NCBI RefSeq assembly: GCF_001194135.2 | Contig: NC_068988.1 | Location: 73,220,008 to 73,284,007, forward strand | Length of the DNA: 64,000 nt | Direction of reading: 5' to 3' | Source of the DNA: Octopus bimaculoides | Lineage: Eukaryota | Shown: positions 1,283 to 62,910 of the stretch, piece after piece | How positions within the stretch are numbered: position 1 is the first letter of the stretch | How the letters are laid out: each line of letters opens with the position of its first letter | Program-made: the position numbers and the translations under genes | Notes under the pieces: generated by a model | Told to the model about the DNA's origin: nothing | The model's input: the letters and a program-made list of their open reading frames with translations, nothing else | The model's database searches: none

Positions 1283-2170
1283 CATATGCACTGAGGCTTC
1301 TCCAGCTGGTTCTTATTCTAGTGACTTCACTTTCAGATTCTCCTCCACTACTAATTATGTCACCTAGTTTAACAGAAACTACCTAACACCTGTAAGGACC
1401 CTCCTGGGCATTTGAGAAATTCAATTTACTGTGTATTCTTAGTGTTTATTGTTCCTGCATACCTGCCACACACAAAGGCTGCATTCTCTGTTAACCATCC
1501 TGTGATTTCACTGCATCTCTTACGTGTCCATAGATTGCATTGGGTACACTGTATGGAATTTCTACCAACGCTTTTTCTATATATTGAGCAGGGCCATTTC
1601 TCTGAAGGGATGATAAGTGGTTTGTCTGCTTTCCTGATTACTAGGATTTTGGTCTTTGCTAAGTTAACTTTAAGGCCCTTTGAATCTAGGCTTTGCTTCC
1701 ATACTTGGATTTTCTTTTCTTATTCTACTTCTTATTCTTATTCAGTTATAAGACCAAGGTCATAAAGGAGCTCCCTTGGGTAACCAGTCTTAAGCTCCTC
1801 TTTTATAGACTGGAGGACTGATAAATAAAAAAGAACTGAAAACTACATTAAATTCATTACTATATTCATTGCTAACTCTCACCTTATTGACAGCACCCCT
1901 ATACATGACTTGGATGGCTCTCACCAGTCATTCATCTACCCATAGCTTCTGCAGTGACTAGCAGATGAGGGAGTAAGGGACCCTGTCAAAAGCTTTCTCC
2001 ATATTGACAAGTGCCAAGTACAGCTGTTTATTTTTTGTCAAGTGCTTCTCCTGCTGTTGTTTTACTAGGAAGAGAGCATTAGCAGTGCTTCTCCATGGCA
2101 CAAAAGCAAACTGCATCACATCTAAGTTAACTCTCTTCCTAATTAGTTGAACAGCCTTTTCTGTAATTTT
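1283..2170 (-). mobile_element. Degraded RTE-clade LINE with internal deletion (RT fragment)
   Basis: Minus-strand QFAFVPWRSTANALFLVKQQQEK..LALVNMEKAFDRVP (RT), then NSIQCTQCNLW..KRCS and SLQVLGSFC.LGDIISSGG. Confidence 0.8.
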
Positions 2171-3843
2171 CATGACCTGGTTCAGCCATAAATTGTTTGC
2201 CATCAACTCCTCATTAACCACTGTCATCATTACCATTAACTCTACCAACGTTTTTGCTACAACAAACTATTACATTTCTCAGCATATGTGTGTATGCATG
2301 ATCATGTTATGGTTATACATCTGTATTGATTTATCAGCGTTTCTTTTTTTACCCTTTTTCTCCTATCTTTCACTGTTACCACCTCAACTAACACTTGTTA
2401 CAACTTCTCTCTCTGCCTCTATCTTGCATGACATTCACTGTTCTCTCCACCATCACAATAACAAGAATTCTCACTTTTCACTAAGGATTTTGCTAGTAGA
2501 AGTTCAATATATTGGTGATGGTGAGTTTCATAATCTAGTATGTCATAACTACACTAAAGACTATTTTCATGTTGCATGTCTAGAACAAGTTAACTTGTTA
2601 GAGCCCATTTCTCTGTTAACTATATCACAAGAGTTGAACACAGCTCTAAATTAATGAAACTACTTATAGTAGTGAGCTGTTATGCTGTAATATATAATTA
2701 CAGCTGGGAGAAGAGGGTAGTTTGAGAGTTAAGTATTTTCAACCAATGTGAACTGTAAACATATCAGCTGTACTCTATCAACACAAGCATCATTCTTGAT
2801 TGATACAACCTTCAAGTTTCAAAATATATTGATCTACACTCAGAAGTAGAATCACTGTCAGTATAAAAGCAACTGAAACCATCATAACTGGAGATCATTT
2901 GAATAATTTACTGAATTGTGAAAAGAAAAAGAAATTTAGTATCAAAGATAAATGCAAAAATGAATCAAAAGATGAAAATTTAACAAGAGTGAGGAACACT
3001 ATGGGAACTGCTGCTCTAGTTACAAGTGGCTTCTTCTTGTTGCTGCAACTATATTAGTTACTACTGCTTTTCAATCCAGTTGTAGTTGTAACAGGCATAG
3101 AAAAAACTAATTTTTGTGAGATTTACATCAATGAAGGATGGAAATGAGTGTGTGAAGTCTCATATGTGGGATCCTCCTCAGTTTGATATGTTAGCATGAA
3201 TTGTACAGATGAATGAGACAGCACCTACTATATATCTGGGTTCTCTTATTTCACCTGTTAGGCTGAGGGAATTTTTGAGCCTGAATCTAAATATTTTTTC
3301 CTTGTTTTCATTTGTAATGGAACATCCATATCATACAACATCAAGGCAAGGAAGCATTACATCTGTATACATATGTACATACATATATATTTAGAAAGTT
3401 GTTTGTTAAGGCCAGTTAGAGAGTGACCATTGGTTTCACATCTATAAAACACTTAGCTATATAAGTGACTCACCAAACGTAAATGGCTGGAGGCATATAA
3501 CTTCTCTATAGCTGGATGGAGGAAAATGTCATGGTTAGTTAACTGTGTAAAGAAAAAAACTCCAGAACAAAACTCTTGCAGTTATGCTGAAGATGGCTGA
3601 TGATAGCAGCATTTCCCTAGTTGGTAAATGAGGAATTCAATGTTTTCAACATGAATTTCCTCTGATGAGGGCAGTGGCTAAACATCTCATTTTGGAATTT
3701 AAAAAGGTCCCTGGGTCAAGTGAGTTTTTCAGGATTCTTGCTCTTTTGACTAAACAAAACTTACGTCTTTTGCTCCCACTGAGGTATGGTCCTAGTTCTT
3801 GTAGCCTTCATTTAATTATGTGTGGCATACCCTCCTCTTTTAA

Positions 3844-4062
3844 CCCTTTCGTTACCACCCTGGCTGAAACTGGCTCTGGCTCTGAGTACAAATGTCTTTT
3901 TACATAAGTTTTCAATTAAAATCTTCCACCAAACCTTAGTCACAATTTATGTTCCTACCACTAGCCGAATGATAACTAAGTTATTTTACTAAATTCTTTG
4001 TTATATTCAAAGTAATTGAAAGAAACACAGAGCATCTCAAAATAAATACAGTAACAAAAGGG
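3844..4062. mobile_element. piggyBac-type MITE
   Basis: TTAA|CCCTTTCGTTAC ... GTAACAAAAGGG|TTAA; TTAA TSD at 3840-3843 and 4063-4066. Second copy at 56103-56305. Confidence 0.85.
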
Positions 4063-4179
4063 TTAAAGCTGGCTAGGGATGTGATGTTGCACCTCTCTGG
4101 AATCCTAAAGGAGAACCTGTGATTGCTAAGATGCTGTTCAAATGGGCTGTCTGTAGATCTAACATTTCCATGTCTGTGC

Positions 4180-4520
4180 CCTTGTGGTGTGTTACAGCTG
4201 CTGATGTTGCCATCATTATCGCTGCTGATACTATTGTCACTTTCAGACCCATTGCTACTGCTGCTGCTACTGCTGGTATCACTACCATTGTTGCTGTTAT
4301 TGCTGGACACCGTTCTGGTGCTGCAGTTGCTGGCAACAAGGCTGCTAGATGCATTGCTGTTATTACTGCCATAGCTGCTGCTGCTGCTGGTGTAACTACC
4401 ACCAACATCATTGCAATTGCTGTCACTGTTGTTGTTATCAGCAGGTGTGTTGTTGGTGTTGTTGCTGTTGCTGCTAACACTGCCACTGCCGTCATCAGTG
4501 CTGGTCACCTCCTCAATCTC
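4180..4520. repeat. Degenerate trinucleotide low-complexity tract (GCT/GTT/ACT)
   Basis: Cryptic triplet simplicity; explains the Ala/Thr/Ser/Asn ORFs seen in several frames. Confidence 0.8.
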
Positions 4521-4624
4521 ATACACTACACCTTCAGAATTGCATTGACACCCTCCCTACTGGACACACATTGTCAACCCTGCATAGGCATCCAGCCTCT
4601 GTGTATGGTTTAGGCATGCTCACT

Positions 4625-5110
4625 AATATTTTTTAATGCTGGGTTCACAACTGAAAAAGACAGAAAATTTCTTTACTGGAGAATAGGCTCAAAATCTTAC
4701 TGACACCCTTCACTATGTTCTTGAACTCGTGAGGTGGGTGACAGGAGGGTGTATTAATGCATGACAGCCTTTTGTTTGTTTTGCAGTAGGGCTTGTATGA
4801 AGAGGTACTCAAGTCCAATGTAATATCTAGAAAGTTAATAATAGTAAGGTTGGTCTCAGTTGTAATACCAAGTCCAAGGGAGCTAAGGGTGCAAATTAGG
4901 TCCTTCCTAAGCCTATCTAGAGTATACCTGCTAGTACCTCTAGAGATAACTAAAGTGTCATCTCTGTATAGACCAAAAAGAACTGACAGGAACCTCTCCA
5001 TTAAGATGTCCAGTATATACAGCCTATGTGGTTGTGGACATCTAAGCTGTTGAAAGCTTCCATCACCACATTGAAAAAGCTTACTGGGTCAGTTTGTTTG
5101 ACCTAAGATG
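4625..5110 (-). mobile_element. Penelope-like element (PLE), reverse transcriptase fragment
   Basis: ORF 4645-5001: GLYRDD, NFLDITLDL, YKPY.K.N, S.HPP; upstream NVVMES..LYIL matches the PLE RT core. Confidence 0.85.
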
Positions 5111-20896: not shown

Positions 20897-21823
20897 ATCA
20901 TCTTCATCAGCATCATTTAATGTCTGTTTTCCATGTTGGCATGGGGTGGACAGTTTGACAGGAGCTAGCAGGCTGGAGAGCTACACCAGGCTCCATTTAT
21001 CTCTTCTGGCATGGTTTCTACAGTTTGACGCTCTTCCTAATGCCAACCACTTTGCAGAATGTATTAGATGCTTTTTATGTGGCACTAGCAAAGGTGTTTT
21101 AATGTGACATCAGCACAAGTACTTTTTATGTGGCACCACAGGTGTTTTGTACATGGTGCCAGTGGGATTGTCAAGTAGTTTGCAAGACAAAGACCTCTCA
21201 ACTGAGAGAGGTAGTGGAACTGAGGGAGGTGGCTGTGAGCCAGGTGAGAAGATAGAGTATACTAGAGGGATAGAGATAGTACTTGACTATTCCTGCAGGA
21301 CAGGGAAGATGGGAGAGAGAGTTAGAGAGAAAGATAGAGAGACAGTCTGAGTGACAGAGAGAGAAATAGATGGTGTTGGTAATGTATTGAGGCCTATCTA
21401 CAGAGAACAGTGGACAGAATATAAGTAATACACTGGGGATAGAGGGAGATTTTCTATGAGAGTGTGAAGGAAGATATTTAAAAACAAGGAAGACATAGTT
21501 GTAACAAGTGATGGTGAGAGAACATGTAGTGGCTGAGAGTGGTGGTATGGTAGATATTTTAGAGCATGGAGAGTGCATAGATAGGCATGTGAGGGAGAGT
21601 GGAGGGGTGCTCATGGGTAATGAGATGGAGGGATGTGAAGATGGGTTGTAGGGGTGTTTTGACAGAGGATGGATTGTGTGTGTGTGTGTGAGTGAATAGG
21701 GCGGGGGCATGGTCATAAAGGACATGCCTGTATGTATGGATGATCACAGTTTTACTTAGCATGATGTGTCTTCTCAAGTACAGCAAATTGCCAGAAATCT
21801 TGGTCCCTTGTCACTTCGTCTGT
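20897..21823 (-). mobile_element. RTE LINE 3' end with long 3' UTR and (GAT)n tail
   Basis: Minus-strand C-terminus TDEVTRDQDFWQFAVLEKTHHAK*, a pyrimidine-rich UTR and a tail homologous to 33198 and 49237. Confidence 0.7.
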
Positions 21824-21940
21824 CAATTTGCTGTACTTGAGAAAGCACATCATGCCAAGTAAAACTGTGGCCATCCATACACACAGGAATGTCCTTTATG
21901 ACCATGCCCCCACCCCACTCACTCACATACACATTCCATC
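21668..21940. repeat. Long inverted repeat (hairpin): ~103-bp core stem, 33-nt loop
   Basis: 21688-21790 vs reverse complement of 21824-21926: about 10 mismatches in 103 by manual alignment. Confidence 0.9.
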
Positions 21941-26817: not shown

Positions 26818-27582
26818 GCGCACACCCACATGCACATGAAAGTGTGGCTGTGTGGTTAAAAAGCTCTCTTTGCAACTACATAGTTCTGGGTTGAATTCTA
26901 ATGTGTGATACATTAGGCACACATTCTACTATAGCTTTAAGAGTGGAATCTATGAGGCATGATCTGTGCAGAAGCTTGTCTACACCAAATAACCACTAAC
27001 AATGGAAAATTCATCAGAAATATATAACTCACCCAATAATATAATGATGAATCATAATGGGAAAGTAATTTTTCATTTCCCTTTTATGAAATATTGTGAT
27101 AGTTGTGAAGATGCAGTACTCACCCCACATCATTTTGTATCCTGATATGGCATTGGCTAGATGGTGGGATAACAGGGGAGTGACAAAAATAAGGTTCAAA
27201 AGGTAAGTGGTATCCCATCAGCATATGCATCCTGTGTTCATGTGCTCATGAAGTCCAACTATTATTGAATTTGTTGAACACTCATAAGCTGGATTTACTT
27301 CATATAATTCTGTTCTTTCACTATCATAATACAATCTGTAATTGGTTATCAAATCTCACAATATACATTTGGAAATAAAGATTGTTTGCTTTTTTTTTAG
27401 TAATATTTTTGCCAGTGGAAGTACAGTGACCACCTTGTTACAGTAACCCTAATACACTACAGTCCATTATGTATATGTGTGTGTATCTGTATGCATGCAT
27501 GTACGCATGTACAAGGTTGGCCAAAAGTCATCTGACAGTCAATCACAACCACATTTAATTCCAAGATTAAAACAAAAAATTA

Positions 27583-28164
27583 TGGATCTTTTTTAAAACG
27601 GGGGCCACATTTTTCATTAACGAAACACTTTGAAACTTGGAACACTGGTAGAAGGTGTCATATAAAACATTTTTTTCTCTTAGTCTTCTTAAAAAAAAAA
27701 GAAATCCATAAGTTATTCCATGTTAAAGTTGTCGTATTTCTGTAATTTCAACCAATCACTGACGTCCATTCAGCCGATATACATTAAGTGCCGACTACAT
27801 AAACAAACGATTCTGAAACAATTAACCCTAACCCTAACCCTAACCCTAGAGTTAGGGTTAGGGTTAGGGTTAAAGCAAATTTAAAATGAAAAAAGCAAAT
27901 AAAACGAAGGTATGGAGATTAAATACGCTTTACATCGCTTAATCAGCCAAAGGAGTAAATATAAACAACTGAATACTTGTCAGTGATTGGTTGAAATTAT
28001 CGAAATAAGACAATTTTTTACATGAAGTAAATTCGAATACAAAAATATTTTTCTGTTCTATAACACAAAATAGATAAGTATACGAAGTTTGAAAGTCTTT
28101 CCGTACCAAAAACACTACGTAAAACATTAATGAAAAATGTGGCCCCCGTTTTAAAATAGATCCA
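27583..28164. mobile_element. Fold-back element with ~40-bp TIRs, an internal IR and a central telomeric palindrome
   Basis: tggatc..aaaacgggggccacatttttcattaa / ttaatgaaaaatgtggcccccgttttaaaatagatcca; internal IR taatttcaaccaatcactgac / gtcagtgattggttgaaatta. Confidence 0.8.
27822..27873. repeat. Head-to-head (CCCTAA)n/(TTAGGG)n telomeric-repeat palindrome
   Basis: tt(aaccct)4-agagtt(agggtt)3aa: a 52-bp palindrome centred on CTAG with one mismatch. Confidence 0.95.
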
Positions 28165-28344
28165 AAATTATTTTATATGAAACTTTGTTAATAAATAGAC
28201 AAATGTTGAAAAAGAAAACAGTGATTTTAACTCACAGCATTCAATTATTAAATATTCATTATTTGAATGAATAAATAAAATGGAATATTAAATATTTATG
28301 GAATTTTGATTTACTGTTGGGTGACTTTTGGCCTATACTGTATG

Positions 28345-32138: not shown

Positions 32139-32714
32139 TTCCAACTGTTCTTTCAGTTCATGACACACATTCAGTCGTAACTGCTTTTGATCTTCTGTGA
32201 GCGAGTGAGGCACAAATTTTCTGCAACTCTTTCATTCACAATTCCTCACTCAAAATTCACTGGCAGGAGTTCCAGGACACACCAGTCATATCAACAAGTT
32301 TGCCAATTGTTCAGTGATGGTTCTCCATGATCAATTCATGAATTTTCTTGATGTTTACATTCGTTTGGGAGGTTGACAGATGCCTTGAACAAGGTTGCTC
32401 TTCAAGTGACAAGTGACCATTCCTAAAGTATGAAAACCACCTGTAAACTTGTGTTTTACTCATAGCAGTATCCTTGTAAGCTGTTTGAAGTATGACAACA
32501 GTTTCAGCTGTGATTTTCCCCAGCAGAAAACAGAATTTCATGGAAGCACTGCAAAACAAAAACACATCATGTGGCAGTATGACTCCAGTTGATAACACTG
32601 GTTGGCAGACTGATGCCTGAGGATCGCATCAAGTGGCTTCTAGCCGTGGAAGCCTGAATTAGAATGGTCTCGTCCCACAGAGAATGTTTCTGGTTACTTT
32701 TGCGTACCCTCTTG
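32139..32714 (-). mobile_element. Mariner relic (5' TIR plus transposase N-terminal HTH), truncated
   Basis: MKFCFLLGKITAETVVILQTAYKDTAMSKTQVYRWFSYFRNG..LEEQPCS; end TA|caagagggtacgcaaaagtaaccagaa; homologous to 63250-63866. Confidence 0.85.
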
Positions 32715-33704: not shown

Positions 33705-33748
<44 letters not shown>

Positions 33749-34139
33749 CATGAGCATGCACATACACATACATATGCACATGAATACATGCACACACACA
33801 GTGGTACTGTTAGCATCCTTCTAATGTTGATGTATATACATGTCTCTCTATGATGTAGTGATGAAGTGCTCTTGCAGAGAAGTTAATCACTCTCTTTCAA
33901 CATTTCTGTTGCAATGTTATCCAGTCCTGAAAACTTCTTGTTTTTTTTAAAAAGTTTGATGGTTATTATAGCAGAACTGCAAAGTGTGGAACTTAGGGAT
34001 CCCCTTTCATTTTCCATGCAGTTGTCAGGGTGCTTTTGAAGCTTTCAGTTTGATAGCTAGTGTATAAATAAAGTCCTTAAAAATATTGAGACTATTGTGT
34101 TTGCCACATTTGAGCCTTCTGCACCTGTGTATTTCTGTA

Positions 34140-35042
34140 TACGTATATAACCATGCTAGAAGGAAAGTGTCAAATTTGTCTACAATGTCAAGGTCAACCA
34201 AAAGAATGTCTCTGTCCAGAGAAAGAGAGATAGCTACAGAAAGGGAAGTGCACTACAAAAGCCAGAGCATCTCAAAGTGATGAACGGAGGTATGTATGGC
34301 TGACAAGGAATAGGGTCTCCACTGAAGAATGAAGAGCGGTTGCAACAGCTCAGAGAAGCAATTTCTCTGAAGCACCTTTCAATTATGATCCAGCAGTTCA
34401 TTATGCAGATGACATGAGAGTTACCATTGGTGCAATGACAACTGAGTGCATACATTGTAAAGCAAGGAAGAGGCCTGTAGAGACACATGCTTTGTGCTGC
34501 AGTGGTGGAAAGGTTAAACTCCCTGCAATCCCCCAACCTCTAGAGCCATTGAAGAAACTGTTGTCATCAACTGACCAAGATTCCGAGCACTTCCAAAACA
34601 AAATTAGACAATACAACGCTGTACTACAGATGACATCATTTGGAGCCACAAGAGATTTAACTGAGCCAGGATTGATGCAAACTTTCAAGATCCAAGGTCA
34701 GATTTATCATTGGATTGTCTCTCTACTACCTCTGTCTGTCAAATGAATCACCAAAATCGGCCTTTCATTGTTTATAATTTGTACCTGTTTTTTTGTTACG
34801 AAATAAGCTACACAAAATGTGTTTTTGAATTATGTGTATATACTTTATATACATATATGAATTGAAAACTTTCTTTTAACATTTCAATTAATGTCTATGT
34901 TCCATGCTGGCATGGGTTGGAGAGTTATTAATGTAGAAATTTGGTATCTCAGCTACTAGCAGTTGAGACCTGTGTAATCGAGATGGCGTTCTTAAATTTC
35001 ATTATTCTCTTTAACGCAGGCAACGCTGGGTATTTCTGCTAG
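34140..35042 (+). mobile_element. Internally deleted Helitron with RepHel N-terminal coding fragment
   Basis: ORF 34414-34746: IGAM..EC.HCKA.K..E...CC.GGKV.LP..P.PLEPL..IRQYN..QMTSFGA..TFKIQGQIYH.I.SLLP. 3' gcaggcaacgctgggtatttctgCTAG|t at 35039-35042. The 5' boundary is approximate. Confidence 0.9.
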
Positions 35043-36686
35043 TACTTGTATAAAATGAAACAGACTAAACATTTGTGGTTGTTATAATATTGGTGAACTT
35101 GACAGAATCCATACCTGAACTTTGATTTTTGGTTGTAATCACTTTATTTCTATAGCTAATAGTTTGAATAACAATGTATAACGAATGTTTCATTGGCTGA
35201 GAGTGATGAGTGTGATGAACCTAGAATAGACAAGAAACACCCCAGTATATTCCCCACAAAACTTTTAATTTGAGTTTTAATCCAAACTCATTTTTACCAA
35301 GTTTATATATATATATATATATATATTTACAATAGACTACATCATATGCTGTCTGGTACCAGATATAATGAACCTCAATAACATAGATAATATTAAAGGA
35401 GTACTTTACCCAGGTAGACTATAACAGGTATGATTGTTTGCTTTCTTATTAAATGTTTGATTAACTCTGGTTTTAATCCCAAACAATCTTCTCAACATGA
35501 CTGTGTTGACATAAAATAGATTAACTTGTGTCAGAAAAAAGTCACTCATGAGGATCCACAAAGCATGGTCTCTATAATATTAAGTGAATGAGATTTAAAT
35601 CTTTGCCTCTATAGAATGCTGGTCTATAGCAGGATCTGTTTTGCCAGAGCAATTGAATTCAGAGTTGTTGGCCAACAAAATATTTATCAATTAGAATAGG
35701 TGCTGTTACTACTTACATCGTTATATTATATCATCTGCAGTTTCTATGGATAGCTAGGTGGATTCAGTTGTTAAGATCTAAGACCAACATATATTTTATA
35801 CACATGATATAATACATTGTATGTTAATTGTGAAATACATATGTAACTTTTTCCCAAGAGATGCTGAAACCAGCAGAACTGTCTGGAGTTTAATTTCCCT
35901 ATGACACCTTCAGGGATTTAAAACAGTTAAGAAGGAAGAGTCTAATTAAGAAAACTATTTGTTTAAATCTCTTTTAGCATCCTTTGTTTCCTGAGGCCCA
36001 CTGAACATTATTAATATAATGTTATCATGTACACACACCTTCGACTTCCATTGACTTCTGTCAACATATAAAACACTTTTCAACTTACTGAGAAACATCT
36101 GTTACTCTACCAACTATTAGAAATGGCTTCAAACACTCCTTTCCTTCACTCCTTTTATTTCTCTTCTTTCTGTCTATATCTGAAACCTCAATGGAACACA
36201 ATGCTTCCTTCAAACCATGCTCTTAAAAAAAGAAATAAATACTTCAGCATTTAACTAATTACATTTCCCAGTTGTTTTCTTTTTCCTGTTTTTTTTAATA
36301 TTCTTTGCTGGTATTCTTTCTAAATATTTCCACTATAGTTTCCTGAAAGTTCCTGTAGTTCACTTTACAGGATGTTAAGCCATTGACAGATATTTTTCAT
36401 CTAGGATAGATTGTCAGTGTACTGCAAATTGAGTGATTTGGCCAGGATGGACAGAGCCAATCCTTTGACTTTATGGTTACAGAAGACTTAAACCCATGAT
36501 CAGCTGGTGCCTTATCCACTTAGTTACTTTGCTTGTATAATAAATAAAACTAGAACAGTTGTGAAATATGTAGTAAATAAAATTTTTATACACATCACTG
36601 TCTTTTACTGATTTTTGATGATATCCTGGTTGATCAACTTCATTAGATATTGGACAACCAGTTAAGAGTTTCATATCAAGTGCTGC

Positions 36687-36838
36687 CACTAACATAGTTA
36701 GAGGAGGGTGGATGGGGCAGTCCTCCCCAGGCAGCACCACTTTTGGGTCTGCTGTATGCAACATGTATTTTTTGTGGTGCCCAGGCACAGCAAACTGAAG
36801 AGCCACCCCAGGTGGCACACACTCTAGCTACACTAGTG
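36687..36838. mobile_element. hAT-type MITE
   Basis: TIRs cactaacatagttagag / ctctagctacactagtg; 8-bp TSD agtgctgc (36679-36686) and agtgctac (36839-36846). Confidence 0.8.
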
Positions 36839-37566
36839 AGTGCTACTATTGGAATATGACTGTTTGTCCAAGGAATTGGACCAATAATCATATTCCACAA
36901 ATAGTGCTGCTATGATACTTGACTCTTAACTGGTCATGATGACCTAGCTATAAGTAGATATCAAGCAACAGAAGCAACTTACTATATGTAGCAGTAACAG
37001 CAACATTAGCAAGTTTTTCTTAAACTTTCAACACTAACTTAAACTTTAGTAGTCTTACTCATTTTATTTTAACTTTTCAGTCTCAACTAAAGCCCTACAA
37101 TTATTTCAATTGGCATTTGCATTGAATCTTAGCCCTGGTTCTATTTACTGACTGTGTAGTTGTTAGTGTGAAACAATCTATTCTGTTTGCATGAAACTCA
37201 TAATAAACAAGCATTAACTATGAAACATTAACTATAATAAGTCTGTAAATTAACACCACTACTTTCTTAGTATGATTTTTAAACATTTTATATAAACAAC
37301 TGTAGAATTTAATTTTCAGTAGTTATAAAAACAACATGAAAGACTAAGTTCTTCTTATGGTTGCACTCCATTAATTACTACATTTTAATTGGCTTCATAC
37401 AGATGTCCACTTCAATATCACTGATGCTGATGACCCATTACATTTTCTATGATTAATTCATTATTAATATTTCCATATCAAATCATATTTATATTCTACT
37501 TAAGCTTCAACATCAATTGTATAGTCTAGGAACCATACACACATAAACATGCATGCATGCACGCAC

Positions 37567-37612
<46 letters not shown>

Positions 37613-38031
37613 TCACAAAACCTTCTTTAGGGGATTTTGCATCAACAGTACCTTCTTTCTCTCTGACCTTTATCTTCCTTTGGCATCCATTCTGCTTAAC
37701 CTGAATAACAACCACTACCACTTACACTTCAAAATTTTTCCTATTTTGTCATTTTCATTGTTATCTTTTCATCTTTACTCTTAGTTTTATTTTTATTTAT
37801 CACTTTCCCACTTCCTACAAACTAATATCATCAATTAGTAACTGTTAGTGAAACTGAAAGCTTTGGCAAAACTGAAATCTGCTGGGTAATGCGAAAGCAT
37901 TGTGTCATTTTCATTAAATCATACATTATACTGTGTAAAATAAAAGTGTTGGATTAATATGGCTTCTGAAAGATTAGCATTTTCAACTTTTCCATGTAGA
38001 ACATATCACAATTTTAAATCTAGATAAAGTA

Positions 38032-38820
38032 CAGGTGGAATCTCTTTAGTCCAGCATTTCATGGGCTGGAAACCCCCATAGTCTGACATGTTTTGAATCT
38101 GCTGCTATTAGTTTGCAGATCTGCCACCAAGATGGCATTGTTAGGAACCTGGCTTGTTTATATTTGATCTCATTCACATAGTTGTCAACTTTCTCACCCA
38201 TCCATTTTACTCTCACAAGAGAAGTTACATGAAATACGGGCATTCCTTCGAGTGTAGGGGCAAGATAAGCTCCACTTCCTTGTTCCACTTCATTTGAAGC
38301 TCCAGAACAACCGAGAAGACTTTTCTAATATCAATGGAGCATCTTTAACAAAACGCTTCCTTACTCACCTTGAGCTCATAATTGCTAGCTGTATCTCTTT
38401 GAGAAACTGCACATACACCACCAGCCTGCATCATCCACCAATAGAAAATATAAGCTTTCTTGTTGCCACCAGAAGTAAGCTCTGTTAATGAACTTCAAGC
38501 TTCTAACTGCTGATAAATGAATATACCATCCTAAATTTTGTTGGCCCATACACAAGGAAGGGCAAGATATACAACTGCTACTGCTCAGAGAGACCATAGT
38601 CTATGCATGTTGATCATGCAATCTGATTTGTAACTTGACATCATAAAATTGGTTACCTCCCCACTTGCAGCTGTTGTCACTAAGACATACACATCGATGA
38701 CTAATTGAATGATTGATACTAACATCTTGTGGTATTCAGTGTAATGAAATAATGTCTCTGAATATACCATCCTGCAGAATGCAGATAAAGTGATGCCAAC
38801 ATCCTGTCTGCAACACATGG
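38032..38820 (-). mobile_element. Heavily decayed pogo/Tigger-like transposon
   Basis: LPCVWANK and YFLLVDDA resemble DDE_1 motifs (LPV.Y.ANK.AW, LL.DNA); terminus TA|caggtggaatctc resembles a Tigger-type TIR. Confidence 0.4.
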
Positions 38821-38889
38821 ACTTAAAAATAATATAACTTATGTTGCTTTGATAGCATTAACAGCTACATAGCCTGAACTAATATATGT

Positions 38890-38912
38890 ATGTATGTATG
38901 TAAGTATGTATG

Positions 38913-38946
<34 letters not shown>

Positions 38947-38975
38947 TGTATGTATGTATGTATGTATGTATGAAT
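38890..38975. repeat. (ATGT)n microsatellite
   Basis: Direct observation; source of the MYVC ORF. Confidence 0.95.
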
Positions 38976-39167
38976 GTATGTACTTATGTACGTATATATT
39001 CTTTAACTATCTGATAATGGTGGAACTGGCTGAAACTTCGAAGTCACTGTTAATACTATTCTTGTTAAAGAATAGATTTGTACTCTACCATATGTATGTA
39101 TGTATTGAGTAATGCTTCAATTTAATGTAAAATTGTTTTTATCATAGCATAAAAAGCAAACATTAAT

Positions 39168-39231
<64 letters not shown>

Positions 39232-39429
39232 ACACTTCAATATGTGCAACTGTTAACACAGACATATTTTTCCTTTCCCTTTCTTTCCTCTCTCCGTCTA
39301 TTTTCTCTCCTCATTCCTTTCTCTAGAAGAGCGTAGGCTCAAAATGTCATAGACTTCTTCCATTTTTCCTGAGTGTTAAACTAATACACCCTGTTTGTTG
39401 TTCCCTCACCTGTCTCTATCTTTTGAACC

Positions 39430-39461
<32 letters not shown>

Positions 39462-39564
39462 GTGAGTCATCTAAGAGATCATAAGTCAGGGAAAAGATGC
39501 ACTCATATATCTATCAGTAGAGTGCGTATATTATCCAAAATGTATACAATTAAATATTCATCAT

Positions 39565-39656
39565 GGTTGATCTTACCAGTTGGTTTCGCATAACGAATAC
39601 CATGGAGTGCTAGGTAACAATCCAATTATATAACTTTACACTCATCAGAGTTAGCC
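39565..39656 (-). ncRNA. Type I hammerhead ribozyme motif, intact core (left arm)
   Basis: GGCTAACT-CTGATGA-GTGTAAAG...CGTTATGC-GAAA-CCA AC TGG-T-A-AGATCAACC. Core at 39642-39648, GAAA at 39584-39587, GUA triplet at 39574-39576. Confidence 0.75.
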
Positions 39657-39730
39657 GATGTGGAAGGGAATATGGCGACTGCTCTCTATTGTTGGACAAT
39701 AAAGAGCAGTTGCCATATTTCTTTCCATAT

Positions 39731-39839
39731 CAGCTAACTCTGATTATATAACTTTACGATGAGCATAAAGTTATATAACCAGATTGTTACCTAACAATCC
39801 ATTGTATTCTTTACGTGAAACTGAGTGGTAAGATCAGCC
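39731..39839 (+). ncRNA. Type I hammerhead motif with disrupted core (right arm)
   Basis: CTGAT|16-nt insert 39745-39760|GA-GCATAAAG...CTTTACGT-GAAA(39817-39820)-CTGAGTGG-TA-AGATCAGCC. Confidence 0.65.
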
Positions 39840-40176
39840 ATGATGAATATTTAATACTATACATTTCGGATAATATATTTATATATATATATATATATAT
39901 ATATNNNNNNNNNNNNNNNNNNNNNNNNNNNNNNNNNNNNNNNNNNNNNNNNNNNNNNNNNNNNNNNNNNNNNNNNNNNNNNNNNNNNNNNNNNNNNNNN
40001 NNNNNNNNNNNNNNNNNNNNNNNNNNNNNNNNNNNNNNNNNNNNNNNNNNNNNNNNNNNNNNNNNNNNNNNNNNNNNNNNNNAACAAACTGCCCCACTAC
40101 TCAGTATCATTAGATGGTAACCGACATAAAGAAATAAGAGCTTTATTTGCATACCCTTAACGTTTTAAAAGATATA

Positions 40177-40212
<36 letters not shown>

Positions 40213-40213
<1 letters not shown>

Positions 40214-41355
40214 TTCATCTCATCTCATCTTCTTTGCCTACTATTCTTGAGAGGGTCATAGGGGTGGAGTTCGCAAGAATGCCTTCCATCAGGTTCTGTT
40301 AGAAGCAACCATCTCCAGTTGATTCTGTTGGATCCCCAAGTGAGACTAACTGAGCTCATGGCTGTTATCTAACCATCTTTGCTCACGACTTATGCCTGGG
40401 TCCCCTGCTGGTTGGTTTTGCCTGTAAAATCTCTCCAGTGATTCTTTTCGGAGGCATGACTGTAGTATCAGAGTTGTGATCTGTTATTCCAGAGAAGTAG
40501 TGACTCTACCTGGAGTGTTTCTCTGATCTTCAAGCCATACATTCTATTAAGTAACATTACTCCAAAGTGGCCATCTCGGTCATTCTTTTGGTCATTCCAC
40601 AAGAGTCATGACCATATGTAAGAGTGGGCACAAACACTGAATTAAAGACAGCAAGTTTGGCTTTCACGCCTACCTGCTTCTTCTGATGACCAAATATTGA
40701 AGCTGGCACATTACTGCACCAGCTCCTCTAAGTCAACCTCCTGCTTGCCATCATTCATGTAAACAACCTCAAGGGACTTGAACTTCACCTGCTCCAGTGG
40801 AACACCAATTTCATATAGAGTGCATTGCACGTGCTTTCTTGAGAGGATGCACGTCTCAGTCTTGATGGCACTGATTTTCATTCTTGCCAAGCAGCATTTG
40901 GCAGCAAACATATCATGTGCATGTCGGAGATATCTTGTTGGGTAGTACTATATTGTTTGCAAATTCCAGTCAATGGATCTTATATCTATGAGGTTCAATA
41001 TTACTTCCAACCTGATTGCAAATGTCAATCCTGTCCATAAAGATTATGAATGGGAGAGGTGACAGTACATACCTTTGGTAGAGTCTGATACCTTCTTTGA
41101 ATGGTTTTGATTTAACCCCATTTACCCAAACACAAACATTAAGGCATTTATAAAGAATAAGACAATAAGAAACTGTCCAATGATCCCATACTCCTACAGA
41201 AACTTCCATAACAAGTCTTATGGAATGTGGTCATATACCTTTTTGAGGTTTATGAAACAAGCATGCATTTCTTGATAAGAGGTTGTTGGACTACCATGGT
41301 TTCTTACCAAATTGGTGACTGGTGTGAATGAGATCACCAAAACCTGCAATATCGT
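40213..41355 (-). mobile_element. RTE (BovB-like) LINE, RT to 3' end with (GATGA)n tail
   Basis: CFINLKKVYDHIP, VNGVKSKPF..GIRL.QRYVLSPLPFIIFMDRI, MPPKRI..AKP..R..LGI; tail tcatctcatctcatc. Confidence 0.85.
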
Positions 41356-41359
41356 TAGA

Positions 41360-42720
41360 GGTAATAAAGCCATTCATACTGCATCATCCTTCATGTGGGG
41401 TAATAAGGATATATTCAGGCCTTAGGTAGAGAGGCCTTTCTAAAAAGTATGTTGTAGTCTCCATCCAATGCTGTGAAAACTGGTCATGAACTTGCGACTT
41501 GTCATGAGAAGCATGCGATGGATACACAAAATTTATGGACCTTGAGATCCCCAAGAAAGGTTAAGAAGGAAGCAGACTCTGACAGTTGATAACTGGAATG
41601 TCATAACCCTTACAAGTAAGAAGCAGGAACTAGTGAAAGAGATGCTATTGGCTAGATATAGTTGGGATTTCCTCAACTCTAGAATTGGATGGAAGATGGA
41701 AACTCTGCTATTTAGGTGTGGTGCCATGAATGATTGCAGAGGCATGAGTGGGTATACTCACAAGTCTCCAGTTGTCGGAATGCGTTATGAAGTGGATCAT
41801 GTTGGGAAAGAGGATTTACCTCTTGAAGCTTAGGTTGAAAGATAGGCCTCTGTGGGTGGTGCAAGTTAATGCACTAAACAGAGAATCCTGATACAAATCC
41901 TTTTTTGATGAAGCTACTGCAGCATTAGATGTAATTATGACCAAGTCATTTATCATAATGGGAGACTTCAATGGCACCAACCACCTGACATAGAAAGGAG
42001 TGATTAGTAGGAATGGTGATCCTAATCTAAATACAAATGGAGAGGCCTTATTAAATTTTTGTTCTAGTAATGGGCTCTCTATTATGAACACCTTCCAGCA
42101 CAAAGACATCCATAAATATACATGATACTGAGGAGACCAGGGACAGAGATCAGTAATTGATCACTTTGATTCCATGCTGGATGTTCATGTCAAGAGAGGG
42201 GCTGCGCTGTCAACTGATCACCATCCAGTTGTCTGCAACATGAGATTACCTAAAACCAAGAAAACCCCCAAAACTGGCAGGTACCAGCTCAACCTAGAGG
42301 ATAAAGTGGGAAGTGCTAGTTGATGAGGAATTCAGGACCAGATATGCAAATATGACTGCATCTAAATTCAGAGAACTCCCTGAACAAACAAAGGATATTG
42401 AAATGAAGTGGTGATGTCCAGCTGAGCAGTTTCTGCTTCAGCTACTAAATGTTGTGGGTGAAAGTGGCTCATTGTGGTGCTGGGTGGCAGGAAGACTCTC
42501 CTTGGTTCAATCAAGAGGTTAAAGATGCCATCTGAACAAAGAATGGAGCTTACAAAGCTTGCCTTAGGAATAAGTCCTTCTTGTTGCACTTGTGGTACAA
42601 GCAGGCATGAAGAGTCACAGTAAAAGTGTCCAAGGTTGGGACATGGGAAGACTTAGGAGTTAAGCTGGAATCTAACTTTAGATCAGCAAATAAAGTATTC
42701 TGGCAGACAATCTGCTGACT
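41360..42720 (+). mobile_element. RTE LINE 5' part (UTR, APE endonuclease, linker), inverted relative to 40213-41355
   Basis: NWNVITLTSK.QELV, IIMGDFNG, NGDPNLNTNGEALLNFCSSNGLSIMNT.FQHKDIHKYT, STDHHPVVC, WEDLG.KLESNF.SANKVFWQTI. Confidence 0.8.
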
Positions 42721-42749
42721 ATGTAATAAGTTTATGTAAATAATAGAAA

Positions 42750-42950
42750 GACTAAATCAAGGAATGTTGTTTGGTGTAATCCGCTATTCACATCTTACAA
42801 ACTAAATTCCTTGGAAATTCTTTGCAACACTGGATAAATATTTCCTACCTTAAAGTAAGTATGGAGAATTACTTGCCATAGAGTAAAATTTTCTTATTCA
42901 ACCACCAGAAATTTGGCTGAAATTATAACAACACATAACAAAAAAGTAAA
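42750..42950 (+). mobile_element. PLE fragment (region upstream of the endonuclease)
   Basis: RNVVWCNPLF (cf. IIWFNPPF), LDKYFP, NLAEIITTHNKK. Confidence 0.5.
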
Positions 42951-44360: not shown

Positions 44361-44599
44361 TCCTATTCATTCTCCATATTCATTAACCATTCACTTCCAT
44401 GGCTCTTTCTTCTAAGTGCAAGCATACCATTATCCATCTGTACACACTTCTCATCCACAACATCTCAATTCTCTCTGATACACTGTTTAAGCAATCAGGA
44501 ACACCTGAGATCAAATAGAGAGTGTATATCTATTATGCATGCTATACACATTATATTTTCACATTATATCTTAAAATTTATCCTGGCTGGATAGGTGGT

Positions 44600-45110
44600 A
44601 ATGTTGATGCGAAGGAGAATTGCACTTGAAATTTTGCAGTTTAACTTGTTGTTTGTGTAAGGGGAGAATGTTTCTTTCCTAATGTTCAAAATGTTCACTG
44701 TTGAAGTTATGATGTTTAATTTCTCTGTAATACAGAGATTGTAACTACTACCATGTGCCTTATATTTACTGGCCTTAGTACTGATGCTCCAGTTTATTGG
44801 GGTTGTCCACATCTCTGTTTTTAAGGCTCCATACCATATTAGACAAAGTGGATGCATGTCTATTTTTATTTAGTTACTACTGGTTGTTGGTACTTTAATT
44901 ATGATATCCAAGTTGTGAATCTTTTATTGAGTTCAGTACTCCTTTCTAAGGTTGGGTATGTCAACCAAATGGTGTCATGAAAAATCAACTGTGTGGAACA
45001 TCTTTCTTCCTAAACTGGGTGATTAAATGAGTGTAGTGTGTAAAAAGGGCTTACAAGCCGGTTTTTTGGGTCTGAAGAGACATATGGCAGTTCACTGGAA
45101 TCATATCTCA
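44600..45110 (-). mobile_element. PLE GIY-YIG C-terminal fragment
   Basis: INWSISTKASKY..GSSYNLCITEKL.I..NILNIRKE. Confidence 0.65.
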
Positions 45111-50070: not shown

Positions 50071-50403
50071 GAAGCTTTCTCACTTGTATTATAATCAAAT
50101 TTTGTATTATAGATGGTCACAGTTATATTTAATTGGATCTATGCTCCGACATCAGCTTTCATGCACACACACACACTCAACTACTACTGTCAACACCACC
50201 ACCACCACTATCAACAACCACAAAGTATTGCAAATATTGCATAGAAAATAATTTCTTTAGTAAAATTAATCCTCCACATTAATTAATTAACTTTCTATTT
50301 CAAATAAATTCCCTGTTTCCTGCAAATTTTGAGATATTTAAAACAAAGTTTAGTTATTGTTATTTGATGTTAATGTTTTATTCAATGTTCTTTATATTTA
50401 CAG

Positions 50404-50965
50404 AACTGTTTGGAAATGGAGCGATATTTAAAAAACGAACCAAAATTAACTGCTTTTAAAAATCTTAAATCTGATCAAAATTCTTTTGATGATTTTAATG
50501 ATGAAGATGAAGAAGATGAGAATGCTGATAGCAATGGTGATGGTTTTGAAGAGATGGAAGACCTCAATTTGGAAGATCAGACAATGGATTCTGTTAGTGT
50601 GCACAGTTTTGAATCTTCTTCAAGTGGTGTGTCATGGGATAGCAATTTGAGTGACACACCAGTTTCCCCTCATAAATCTCCAAAAGATTCTATAATTGGA
50701 AGCTGCCTCTTAAAATGTCGGGTTGGACATAAATTAAACAATACTGAAAGAAGTGAAATAAAAAAAGTTGCCATGTACTCATCACCAGGAAAACAATCAC
50801 GTTCATACTCTCTTCAACCAGGACACATTGCTCAAGTAATTCACCAATTTGAAAATGGATCAAGTTCAGACATTAGAAGAAGAATACACAAATGTTTCTA
50901 TGAGGGCTGTAAAAAAGTCTACACAAAAAGCTCTCATTTAAAAGCTCATCTTCGAACGCATACAG
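50404..50965 (+). CDS. KLF6/7: Internal coding exon of a Kruppel-like factor, KLF6/7 (luna) subfamily: N-terminal motif, acidic/Ser-rich domain and zinc finger 1
   Basis: Acceptor ..tttatatttacAG|AAC (phase 0) and donor ACAG|GTAAT (phase 1); 562-nt open frame. [13 protein letters not shown] corresponds to KLF6/7 [44 protein letters not shown] is a KLF ZF1. Boundaries match the vertebrate KLF6 exon 2 as I recall it. Confidence 0.93.
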
Positions 50966-51789
50966 GTAATCTATTCATATTCTCTTTGATGTGATGAGCA
51001 CTATAAAATAGAAATAAACACTGGAAAATGGGGTCCACTATCTGGTTTTGGGTTAGTTGATGTTTTTTCAGTCTTCTTATGTTGCTAATGTCTTTGGAAA
51101 GGCATAGGTAACCCCCATCTCCCTGAACAGTTTTATTTTTCTCCATCATCCAGTGTGCAATCTAGTAAATTTGGTTTAATTCTTCCATTACTACTTTAAG
51201 AAGTTTATTGCTTCGCTGATGAGGTCAAAGTATATAAATCAATATAGAAATAATGTGTTATAGATTTGTATAATTTTGCTGTAATTATTTTGTGTTGTAA
51301 TTTCTGTAAAATCATAAAAAAAAATATTTTCCATGTTGCTTGACTCCACTAATTTATGATGAAAAAACATCATCATCCCCCCCCCCCTTCATTTATATTG
51401 TCTCCAACAGTGCTTGTTGCAGTCCCTTGTCTTCTGCTTTGTGAGGTTCAACATCCTTCTCCACTCCTCATGTCTTCCTTGGTATTCAACTTCCACAGAT
51501 TCTTTCTATTTGGATTGCTTGATACTTATTTACCCAACTGTCGTCCTTTGTATGCATCATGTCTATACCAGTGCAGTCTACACTTGCACACTACTGCTGA
51601 TTCCTCTCATACCAATTTTTCTCTGCATTTTCTATTATTTTGTTACTGCATACTAAAATCTTGCATCCAGTGGAATATGCTTGTCTCATTTCTTTCCAGC
51701 CTCCATGCATAATCCACATTTAATGATCATGATTTACTCCCAAGCAATATCATATTGTGCACTAACACCATACAATCTGCCCTTCACTC

Positions 51790-58299: not shown

Positions 58300-58830
58300 A
58301 ATACAGTCAAGGTTAGTTATAATTGCCTCAGTAATATAGTGTCATAGATATTAAACCACAATAAGAGAACTATACATACTAACAATTTGAATCCAACTGA
58401 ACAAGACTGAAATTTTAGAAACTGGTTGCCATGTCCACTAGATGGTTGGTGCCTCACAAAAGAGATCTTCCACAAGGTAAAAGTTCTATGCAATGGAGAT
58501 ACTGCAAAATCATATTTAGGGCTCACAAAAAACATCTTTGAGGCCCATTTCATGCAACACCTTTACATGTTCTGTAACAGTAGTGGGAGGAATTCTTTAT
58601 CTCTATCCAAGTATATCTGGCATCTAAAGGACAATGGTATAAATATTTCTACCATCAAGTGGAGCATTTTAGCAAAAGCAAGTGCCCATAACAGAAGGGG
58701 CACAAAATATAATCTGTGCATAACTATAAAACTGAGCATCCTACCTGCAACTAACATGCTAAATTCAAGAGAGAAGACATTTGCCCCCTGCCAACATGCA
58801 AAAAAGTTCAGTCTGCAAATATTTAAACAT
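58300..58830 (+). mobile_element. PLE GIY-YIG endonuclease region
   Basis: VSYNCL.N..HNK, CPLDGWCL, KSYLGLT..F, SLSKYIWHLKD..IKWSILAKA, YNLC, LNSR.K..PCQHAKKF. Confidence 0.85.
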
Positions 58831-59279
58831 ACTCCTTCCCCAGGACAGGATAGCAGCAACCATGAATGCAAATTTCTAATCATAGGGTCCTCACTTCATC
58901 CTTATCATAATAATGATTGTTACTGCCCACCCCATCATTATCCCAACTATTACTGTCATTGTTACTACCTACCCCTTTTGCCAGTGATTTCATTACTATC
59001 CTTATTATCACTAGTTGAACTGCTGTAAACATTGTTTTGTAACAATGTATTCAAAGTGATTATTTATCAAGTGTGACTAGTTTTTTTAAATGATTTTTTT
59101 TTCTTCATTTATTCATTGCTGTTCTGTAATTGTATATGAACATTTATAAATTGGAAATAATTTTAAATTAAGTAGATTCATTCCTGCAAATGTTATTATA
59201 TGGTCACTAAACAGAATTTTGGGAATTTTCTTTTCATTAATGTGTTGTCTGTGCAATAATCTGGGTTGTTCAATGTAGT

Positions 59280-62172: not shown

Positions 62173-62910
62173 TAAAGAGTGTGATGGGTAAATTGTCACC
62201 ATTTTATATTTTTAATTTTGCACATGTGTATTGTTTATTTTTGATTTTTTGACTACACATTATAGTAGGATCAGTTGGGCACTGTATGTGAGAAAAACAG
62301 CACCAATTCACTCTGCCACAAATTTGGAAATGGCATGCTGTACTGCTTGGCATTCATGCCAGAAGCTCCAATAAAAACATTTCAGAGTGTTTGGCTGTCA
62401 ATTTGAGGACAATGCAGAGGATTCAGAAACAGTTAGATGTGTCTAATAGTAATTATGAAGGTACTGCAGCTTGGAAAACTCTCTCTCTGATCATTCTGAT
62501 AAAAAAAGAACTCCTGAAATTGTTGGTGAGATCTAGGCCATGATTGACAATGATCCCTCCAAGTCAATCAGGTCCATCGCCTGGGACATGGGAGTGTTTG
62601 ACTTTCTTATCAGGCAGGTAAAGCGAAAGACCAACAAAACTCCTTGTAACATCAAAGATGAACTGAAGGCAAGGATTATGGCAGCATTCACCAACTTAAA
62701 CAAGGAGACTGTCCAGAGGGTTGTAGGAGATTCCGAAGTCATCTGGAGGCTATGGTTGAAGCCAATGGTGATTTTATTGGATAATTTACTCTTTAGTATT
62801 TCAAGATATATTTATGTAATTTTGGTAAATATATCTGTTAAAATGATATGCCAGTATTATTTTCATTTTTGTGTAATTTAGACAACAATTTATTGACTGC
62901 AGCTTGCATA
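62173..62910 (+). mobile_element. Tc1/mariner (maT-like) non-autonomous derivative
   Basis: In-frame fusion of the N-terminal IDNDPSKSIRSIA.DMGV..LIRQV to the C-terminal NKTPCN.KDELKARIMAAFTNLNKETVQ; catalytic core absent; degenerate termini. Confidence 0.7.

Follow-up and report, generated by a model that had tools for sequence, protein, structure and literature searches.

What kind of element is the 351-bp fold-back repeat that occupies positions 39527-39877 of a 64,000-nucleotide stretch of Octopus bimaculoides DNA (hereafter the window), inside the gene for the Krueppel-like factor KLF6? A first-pass annotation, made from the letters alone, had described it as a palindrome with a hammerhead ribozyme motif on each strand and had proposed a bidirectionally self-cleaving fold-back retroelement whose gene-sense copy may have been lost to selection. 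The palindrome is real, and one of its arms carries a hammerhead-like motif with an intact core. The explanation that we favour, tentatively, is that it represents the dead relic of a Penelope-like element (PLE) or of a retrozyme-type retroelement, arranged head-to-head. A fold-back miniature inverted-repeat transposable element (MITE) ranks second, and a local inverted duplication third.

The window corresponds base for base, its eight N gaps included, to positions 25677-89676 of a 110.9-kb KLF6 record of O. bimaculoides (GCA_001194135.2, CM046608.1; here L001). Krueppel-like factor 6 of this species is matched at 99% identity by a KLF-like reading frame at window positions 50410-50994. Of KLF6, exon 1 lies at L001 10001-10135 and exon 2 at window positions 50395-50967, with the gene on the plus strand, and the palindrome sits within the 66-kb intron 1. 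The intronic position, on which the earlier reading of the plus strand had been made conditional, is thus borne out by the exon mapping. O. vulgaris and O. sinensis both have a member in the 90% cluster of the KLF6 protein, and their loci (L002 and L003) were used for comparison.

The repeat is a near-complete palindrome and one of two long palindromes in the window that are not microsatellites. It consists of a left arm of 166 nt (39527-39692), a central spacer of 3 nt, TGG (39693-39695), and a right arm of 182 nt (39696-39877), which is 166 nt plus 16 extra. The repeat search returned two pairs, 39527-39646 with 39758-39877 (120 nt, 85%) and 39644-39692 with 39696-39744 (49 nt, 88%, 3 nt apart), the latter bordering the spacer. 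In a global alignment of the left arm with the reverse complement of the right arm, for which a MAFFT arm alignment was also made, 142 of 166 positions match, with 24 mismatches and one 16-nt gap. This equals 85.5% identity, in agreement with the arms, 3-nt loop and roughly 86% identity described before, and leaves the arms 14.5% diverged. CpG decay explains 11 of the 24 substitutions when CpG sites are restored without regard to structure. The GC content of the unit is low (33%). TATA is read at both ends of the palindrome, so that a TA or TATA target duplication is possible, but TATA is itself palindromic and the candidate duplication is not separable from the arm ends.

An assembly artefact, a false fold-back formed at a contig end beside an N gap, had been named at the outset as an alternative that would overturn the proposal. 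The gap is indeed there, 178 N at 39905-40082 and beginning where it had been placed, and the right arm stops only 27 bp short of it; the interval is a (TA)n microsatellite (39878-39904) that adjoins the right end of the palindrome, and (TA)n resumes after the gap at 40172-40213. The chromosome-level record has the same contigs and gaps as the window and gives no independent check of the assembly. An artefact would have identical arms, however, whereas 24 substitutions, 11 of them CpG-type, and a 16-nt indel separate the arms here, and left arm, loop and right arm all lie within one gap-free stretch (33705-39904). The diverged arms effectively exclude this explanation.

The hammerhead-like motif with an intact core lies on the minus strand at 39565-39656, in the left arm. 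Its core reads CTGATGA from 39648 to 39642 and GAAA from 39587 to 39584, and its GTA ends at 39574, which places the predicted cut between 39574 and 39573. Helix II is formed by GTGTAAAG/CGTTATGC, with six contiguous pairs, two of them G-U, and one further pair. Helix III is ACCAACTGGT (ACC-AACT-GGT), with 3 bp and a 4-nt loop, and helix I has two contiguous proximal pairs and a distal GGCT/AACC of which 3/4 are paired. Helix II closes an insert of 38 nt that forms a further hairpin of 7/8 bp. The conserved type I hammerhead core is present on the minus strand of the left arm and absent from the plus strand of the right arm. There, on the KLF6-sense strand, the sequence and the arm alignment place a mirror copy at 39732-39839 in which 16 nt split the core between CTGAT and GA, with helix II GCATAAAG/CTTTACGT, GAAA at 39817-39820 and A17 of the GTA at 39830; the hammerhead descriptor introduced below did not detect this copy. 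In both arms the sense strands of the motif run from the centre outward. The motif order in each arm, the split plus-strand copy, the intact minus-strand core with its GUA site, and the cut position as predicted from sequence are therefore as first annotated.

The restored stems fared less well. When the ancestral state was reconstructed by the CpG rule only, structure being ignored, helix II became GCGTAAAG with CTTTACGC or CGTTACGC (C(T/G)TTACGC), paired at 8/8 or 7/8 positions; the perfect 8-bp helix II claimed earlier stands if the right-arm state is taken at one non-CpG site and otherwise falls to 7/8. The perfect inner 8-bp hairpin and the stem I GGCT/AGCC had been put together from halves of different arms, and each extant arm reaches 7/8 and 3/4, respectively. 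Helix III had been called near-palindromic, but its CpG-restored form ACCGA(C/G)TGGT has 3 bp and a 4-nt loop and is less palindromic than the form then quoted: ACCAACTGGT of the left arm is self-complementary at 8/10 positions, and the restored form reaches 8/10 only when G-U pairs are counted.

How readily such a motif arises by chance was estimated with a descriptor that demands the core, a helix II of at least 4 pairs, a helix III of at least 3 including A15.1-U16.1, H17, and a helix I of at least 2, and that was tuned after the motif had been seen. It found the left-arm motif as its one match in the window and in the 110.9 kb of L001, both strands being covered (221 kb of strand). In 1000 Markov-1 simulations the number of matches expected per window on both strands was 0.046 for the lenient form, 0.017 with a helix II of at least 5, and 0.005 with a helix II of at least 6, which is the observed value; a smaller simulation run gave 0.023. 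Scaled by length, the a priori chance of a motif within the 351-bp palindrome is about 3e-5 before post-hoc choices. The motif is rare for one window, and pure chance at exactly this place is unlikely. With a relaxed minimal-hammerhead descriptor, the sole match in the three Octopus loci was a weak U3-A8 variant, present in L002 and L003 at orthologous sites, which fits the 0.25 expected per 108 kb.

A substantial body of results weighs against the view that the palindrome descends from a ribozyme-bearing retroelement. Extrapolated arithmetically across the 2.7-Gb genome, about 200 chance motifs of such quality would be expected. The Rfam hammerhead families gave no match in the whole window at the gathering score, and at E<=10 none in stretches of 455 nt and 124 nt or in the full 64 kb; the scan of the 124-nt stretch listed matches down to 7 bits, none of them a hammerhead. 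The same Rfam scan of three contigs that contain PLEs (L004, L006 and L007) was also blank and thus provides no positive control for motifs of the PLE type. In the extant left copy, the fold constrained to a hammerhead has -9.6 kcal/mol against -21.6 kcal/mol for the best fold, 12 kcal/mol worse. The gap narrows in the CpG-restored sequence, to 2.4 kcal/mol with right-arm states (-27.3 against -29.7 kcal/mol), which, like the 7-8 of 8 helix II pairs after restoration, counts in favour of the relic; with left-arm states the values are -12.6 against -18.6 kcal/mol. A comparison of the arms, and thus of two copies, showed no double compensatory change in the helices; all helix differences are single-sided and of CpG type, so that the covariation proposed earlier as a check is not seen. 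Substitutions number 16 in the 92 nt of the motif and 8 in the 73 nt beyond it; they are thus no rarer in the motif, which fits neutral decay and gives no sign of constraint. The 38-nt insert under helix II is unlike described animal hammerheads. As neither covariance model nor covariation, thermodynamics or family evidence gives confirmation, the identification as a ribozyme is not established.

Two other classes of RNA were considered for the same sequence. A microRNA precursor at the centre of the palindrome was rejected, since Rfam scores of at most 39 bits stand against cut-offs of at least 64 and represent generic hairpin matches. A box C/D snoRNA, to which UGAUGA boxes might point, was likewise rejected (SNORD11, 16.7 bits, E=2.9).

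The two arms also bear on what an RNA that spans the element could do. Such an RNA is predicted to fold into a hairpin of -202 to -204 kcal/mol, in which both motifs would be sequestered, and this includes the KLF6 pre-mRNA. The claim of bidirectional self-cleavage is hard to maintain on this basis, as an intact core is found on at most one strand and the spanning transcript would be held in the hairpin. Because the sense core is split and the spanning RNA folds in this way, the palindrome probably has no ribozyme function at present.

The 16-nt segment that splits the sense core, TATATAACTTTACGAT at 39745-39760 on the plus strand, was located by arm alignment and repeat search. It is flanked by GAT...GAT and interrupts the CTGATGA of the right arm after CTGAT. 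As the first-pass annotation had recognized, it repeats the neighbouring sequence in inverted form: it corresponds to the reverse complement of 39766-39777 next to it, within an 18-nt local hairpin of 94%, and it matches 39625-39639 of the left arm at 15/15 positions. Right-arm positions 39739-39783 accordingly contain an 18-bp near-perfect local hairpin that the segment has either made or kept. Where the template copy now reads ATG by decay, the segment still has ACG, which indicates that the indel event is old. A template switch may have inserted the segment into the right arm, as the first-pass annotation proposed. Equally, a microhomology deletion between the GAT repeats may have removed a hairpin arm from the left arm, a further point against descent from a ribozyme, since the ancestor would then have been without CTGATGA and the box would have been created by the deletion. 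Two copies fit either polarity of the indel. The idea that an insert knocked out the sense copy under selection is thus not upheld, and a single locus cannot show selection.

With these results, the original picture of an active, bidirectionally self-cleaving fold-back retroelement, in which the dimer moves as a unit and selection against cutting of the KLF6 pre-mRNA inactivated the sense copy, appears very improbable. It would agree with the intact minus-strand core and GUA site, and a 2026 preprint reports that retrozymes are depleted from vertebrate introns (10.64898/2026.07.22.740005). Arms that are 14.5% diverged by neutral-looking decay speak for an element that is neither young nor active, and in the full-length RNA neither motif would be free of the hairpin of about -202 kcal/mol. 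Family evidence and Rfam support are both lacking, and neither the indel, which fits either polarity, nor the one locus speaks for selection. A related reading would postulate an octopus family of non-autonomous fold-back retroelements whose dimer is mobile and whose strands would each carry a type-I hammerhead with a long, rod-like helix II, with arm pairing gating cleavage, the present copy being decayed and broken on the sense strand. We consider this reading improbable as well.

The question of a family was addressed with a blastn search of the arm and a two-arm nhmmer profile, which found no second copy in 325 kb from three Octopus species, and this again counts against a retroelement origin. 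The same approach readily recovers relatives of the palindrome at 21681-21933, so that the method works on another family. The family, if there is any, is not dense, and a few thousand copies in 2.7 Gb are compatible with this result. IUPAC patterns of conserved arm stretches had 0 matches in metagenome, viral and prokaryotic contigs, which hold no octopus DNA and are uninformative on copy number, and a chimeric protein query built from stop-free stretches of both arms returned nothing at E<=10. With no second copy in the 325 kb and no usable empty site (see below), the view of the palindromic dimer as a mobile unit has not found support.

Both the shape and the ends of the palindrome allow it to be read as a fold-back MITE, moved into a TA site by a Tc1/mariner-type transposase, with the hammerhead-like motif as a coincidence in hairpin-rich and AT-rich sequence. 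Tc1/mariner elements and MITEs are annotated in O. vulgaris (PMC13282606), the former as the largest class with terminal inverted repeats. An almost complete 351-bp palindrome is what such an element would look like, the TATA at both ends permits a TA or TATA duplication, and the blank Rfam hammerhead scan likewise speaks for it. The window also holds other inverted-repeat elements. One, at 21681-21933, has 115-nt arms that are 90% complementary around a 23-nt spacer. O. vulgaris and O. sinensis retain it at the orthologous position, though without about 57 bases of its centre, and relatives at L001 14937-15029 and 26845-26957 and near 14 kb in L002 and L003 place it in a repeat family. The other, at 27574-28173, is a 600-bp element with 47-nt terminal inverted repeats (94%) and an internal inverted repeat. 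Sequences about 72% similar to it lie at non-orthologous positions in L002 and L003, and judging by these features it is probably a small DNA transposon. For the 351-bp palindrome, a MITE origin nevertheless has to accept a duplication that is indistinguishable from the arms, the missing second copy in 325 kb, and a motif whose a priori chance inside an element of this length is about 3e-5. The termini, TATTATCC..., are moreover of a kind that we take to be unlike the usual Tc1/mariner ends. On balance we regard a MITE as a possible but doubtful explanation.

Comparison with the two related species shows that the palindrome does not stand alone. The KLF6 intron aligns at 88-93% with L002 and L003 on both sides of a 3.9-kb block (38899-42800, delimited by synteny blocks and junction alignments) that holds the palindrome and is without counterpart in the orthologous intron of O. 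vulgaris or O. sinensis. There, the same flanks are joined by about 70 bp of (TACA)n (L002 63540-63611, L003 64810-64873), and the left junction in O. bimaculoides has the complementary motif (TGTA)n. Besides the palindrome, the block comprises (TGTA)n, two runs of (CA)n, a (TA)n tract, the N gap and a long interspersed nuclear element (LINE) with an internal inversion. A clean empty site was not found in L002 or L003, as the entire block is missing and not the palindrome alone. A possible 7-bp duplication, ATTCTTT/ATTCCTT, at the block junctions is weak. As far as the alignments indicate, the block could either have been inserted in O. bimaculoides or have been deleted in the lineage of O. 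vulgaris and O. sinensis. The divergence of the arms (Jukes-Cantor, JC) is 0.16, or 0.09 without CpG sites, and that of the flanks between O. bimaculoides and O. vulgaris is also JC 0.09. This dating does not polarise the block, and if the arms were born identical, the palindrome would be about as old as the species split.

The LINE in the block (40216-42775) is decayed and internally inverted in the manner of twin priming: the minus strand carries the 3' half of its reverse transcriptase, ending in (GATGA)3(TA)n near 40216, and the plus strand carries its AP-endonuclease part at 41816-42760. With about ten in-frame stops in 290 codons it looks old, and no related copy was found in the 325 kb from the three Octopus loci. 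The palindrome lies just past the 3' tail of this LINE, and from this arrangement a 3' transduction from another locus is conceivable. An origin from a tRNA-derived short interspersed nuclear element is out, as a tRNA scan of 38800-42900 was empty.

This surrounding gives some weight to a one-off local inverted duplication, produced by fold-back or template-switch repair or carried along with the neighbouring LINE, with CTGATGA present by chance. Symmetric arms meeting at a 3-nt loop, no other copy in 325 kb, and a place in a microsatellite-rich block with an inverted LINE that the sister species do not have are all as this explanation would predict. A template-switch or hairpin mutation is visible in the right arm, and the GAT...GAT flanks of the indel mean that a 16-nt deletion in the left arm may have made CTGATGA. 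What a local duplication leaves unexplained is the full core with three helices, running from the centre outward, beside a (TA)n tract. A direct-orientation source of the duplicated 166 bp was also not found nearby. We think that this origin is rather doubtful.

The retroelement relic, which we favour, would have arisen from two 5'-truncated copies of a unit of about 170 bp, placed head to head with their 3' ends outward. This was probably a single event, in which a reverse transcriptase snapped back on its own cDNA; such a snap-back would explain why the arms meet at a 3-nt loop. The right-hand 3' end would have been placed on the (TA)n microsatellite. Each unit would once have borne a type-I hammerhead-like motif in which helix II was unusually long, helix I short and helix III small, and this motif may in the past have been catalytic. 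Since then, neutral decay would have introduced the 24 substitutions (11 CpG-type) and the one 16-nt, hairpin-forming indel.

Evidence that PLEs are present in octopus supports this relic reading. A PLE fragment at 4400-5001 on the minus strand shows the C-terminal motifs of a reverse transcriptase (YRDD...FLD...YKPY...HP) leading into the start of a GIY-YIG domain (VVYEI), after which it is broken by an S/N-rich low-complexity stretch (3981-4526), and PLE families are annotated, together with MITEs, in O. vulgaris (PMC13282606). An exhaustive search with 4648-5001 (minus strand) gave 2300 relatives, including proteins of 700-900 aa. Five loci of relatives (L004-L008) come from ocean metagenome, ENA, Logan and non-octopus records, and neither the octopus loci nor the arm have any DNA in common with L004-L007. 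Two further frames, 44564-44857 (minus strand) and 58426-59028 (plus strand), have the look of a GIY-YIG endonuclease (YLGLT...W.I...C.LC..EK...LN.R.E) and no Pfam match. A homologue search with the latter found two relatives only; the former lies in sequence conserved with O. vulgaris, which makes its insertion old. All three of these fragments are distant from the palindrome and have no sequence in common with the arm, and it counts against a PLE origin that no reverse-transcriptase or GIY-YIG frame adjoins the palindrome.

In general, intron 1 is crowded with decayed transposons. Short frames at 32311-32598 (minus), 62540-62881 (plus), 34414-34746 (plus) and 1958-2248 (minus) have the look of mariner-type transposase pieces, a Helitron N-terminal piece and a LINE reverse transcriptase. 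The frame at 1958-2248 has weak Pfam RVT_1 support, the sole Pfam match among ten transposon-like frames scanned. The frame at 34414-34746 had no Pfam match, and the two mariner-like frames are putative.

If the motif is a true hammerhead relic, it would extend the ribozymes of the PLE and retrozyme type to cephalopods. It would also exemplify a symmetric inverted pair with an extended helix II, a case of relevance to the way in which PLEs build inverted structures. This would be a modest addition to the known picture and not a new kind of system. If the motif is due to chance, the locus is an ordinary decayed repeat. Whatever its origin, the palindrome places a 166-bp near-perfect intramolecular duplex into the KLF6 pre-mRNA. 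Such a duplex is a potential substrate of ADAR or Dicer, in a group of animals, the cephalopods, that is noted for heavy RNA editing.

Among known systems, fold-back MITEs resemble the element in the near-complete 351-bp palindrome, the TA-type ends and the non-coding, intronic situation. The element differs from them in having no demonstrable target duplication, no copies in 325 kb and no terminal motif of a known superfamily. Animal retrozymes of the non-LTR kind (LTR, long terminal repeat) consist of units of 150-450 bp in head-to-tail tandem array, every unit bearing a type-I hammerhead, and give rise to circular RNAs. They are known in molluscs, with about 5000 motifs in the mussel (Cervera & de la Pena 2020, PMC7229834). 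Unlike these, the palindrome is an inverted pair with no direct copies and is not seen by the Rfam hammerhead models, but its unit of about 170 nt (range 170-400 nt in retrozymes), its low GC content of 33% and its type I motif order are like theirs (PMC7229834).

In the hammerheads of PLEs, helix II spans 6-8 bp and helix I 2-5 bp, G10.1 pairs with C11.1, and helix III is small and near-palindromic, with palindromic positions 15.2-16.2 and loop 3 through which a dimer can form; they sit in the flanking pseudo-LTR or the 3' part of the element, and as single motifs they show low activity in vitro (PMC4209133). In comparison with these, it weighs against kinship that the candidate is without the typical unpaired base between positions 9 and 10.1, as G10.1 follows directly after A9 and is paired to C11.1. 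Its helix II also closes a 38-nt extra hairpin that is absent from the published description (PMC4209133), its helix III is a 3-bp hairpin and not a bare palindrome, and it has no adjoining PLE frame or pseudo-LTR. The candidate does have the CUGAUGA...GAAA...UA core, G10.1-C11.1 and long helix II of the PLE hammerheads (PMC4209133), together with a small helix III that is palindromic in part and an AT-rich non-coding context. A contiguous helix I of only 2 bp is also found in the Drosophila virilis PLE variant. In Schistosoma, PLE hammerheads are paired on opposite strands at 100-700 bp (Cervera & de la Pena 2014, PMC4209133), and the two motifs of the candidate are likewise on opposite strands, about 100-250 bp apart.

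The insertions of PLEs are 5'-truncated and often accompanied by an inverted 5'-truncated copy, so that inverted repeats are formed (Craig et al. 2021, PMC8557442). The Naiad clade is reported to have a bias for insertion into (TA)n, and Neptune is hypothesised to share it (PMC8557442). Naiads are reported to be without canonical hammerheads, unlike the palindrome with its hammerhead-like motif, and the palindrome further differs from the inverted PLE insertions in that it consists of two symmetric 166-nt stubs cut at the same base, with no full-length copy. The general fit to PLE biology that the first-pass annotation had seen is nonetheless supported by these reports of inverted copies, (TA)n bias and opposite-strand pairs (PMC8557442, PMC4209133): like the inverted PLE insertions, the palindrome is a head-to-head arrangement whose 3' ends point outward, and one of its outer ends lies on (TA)n.

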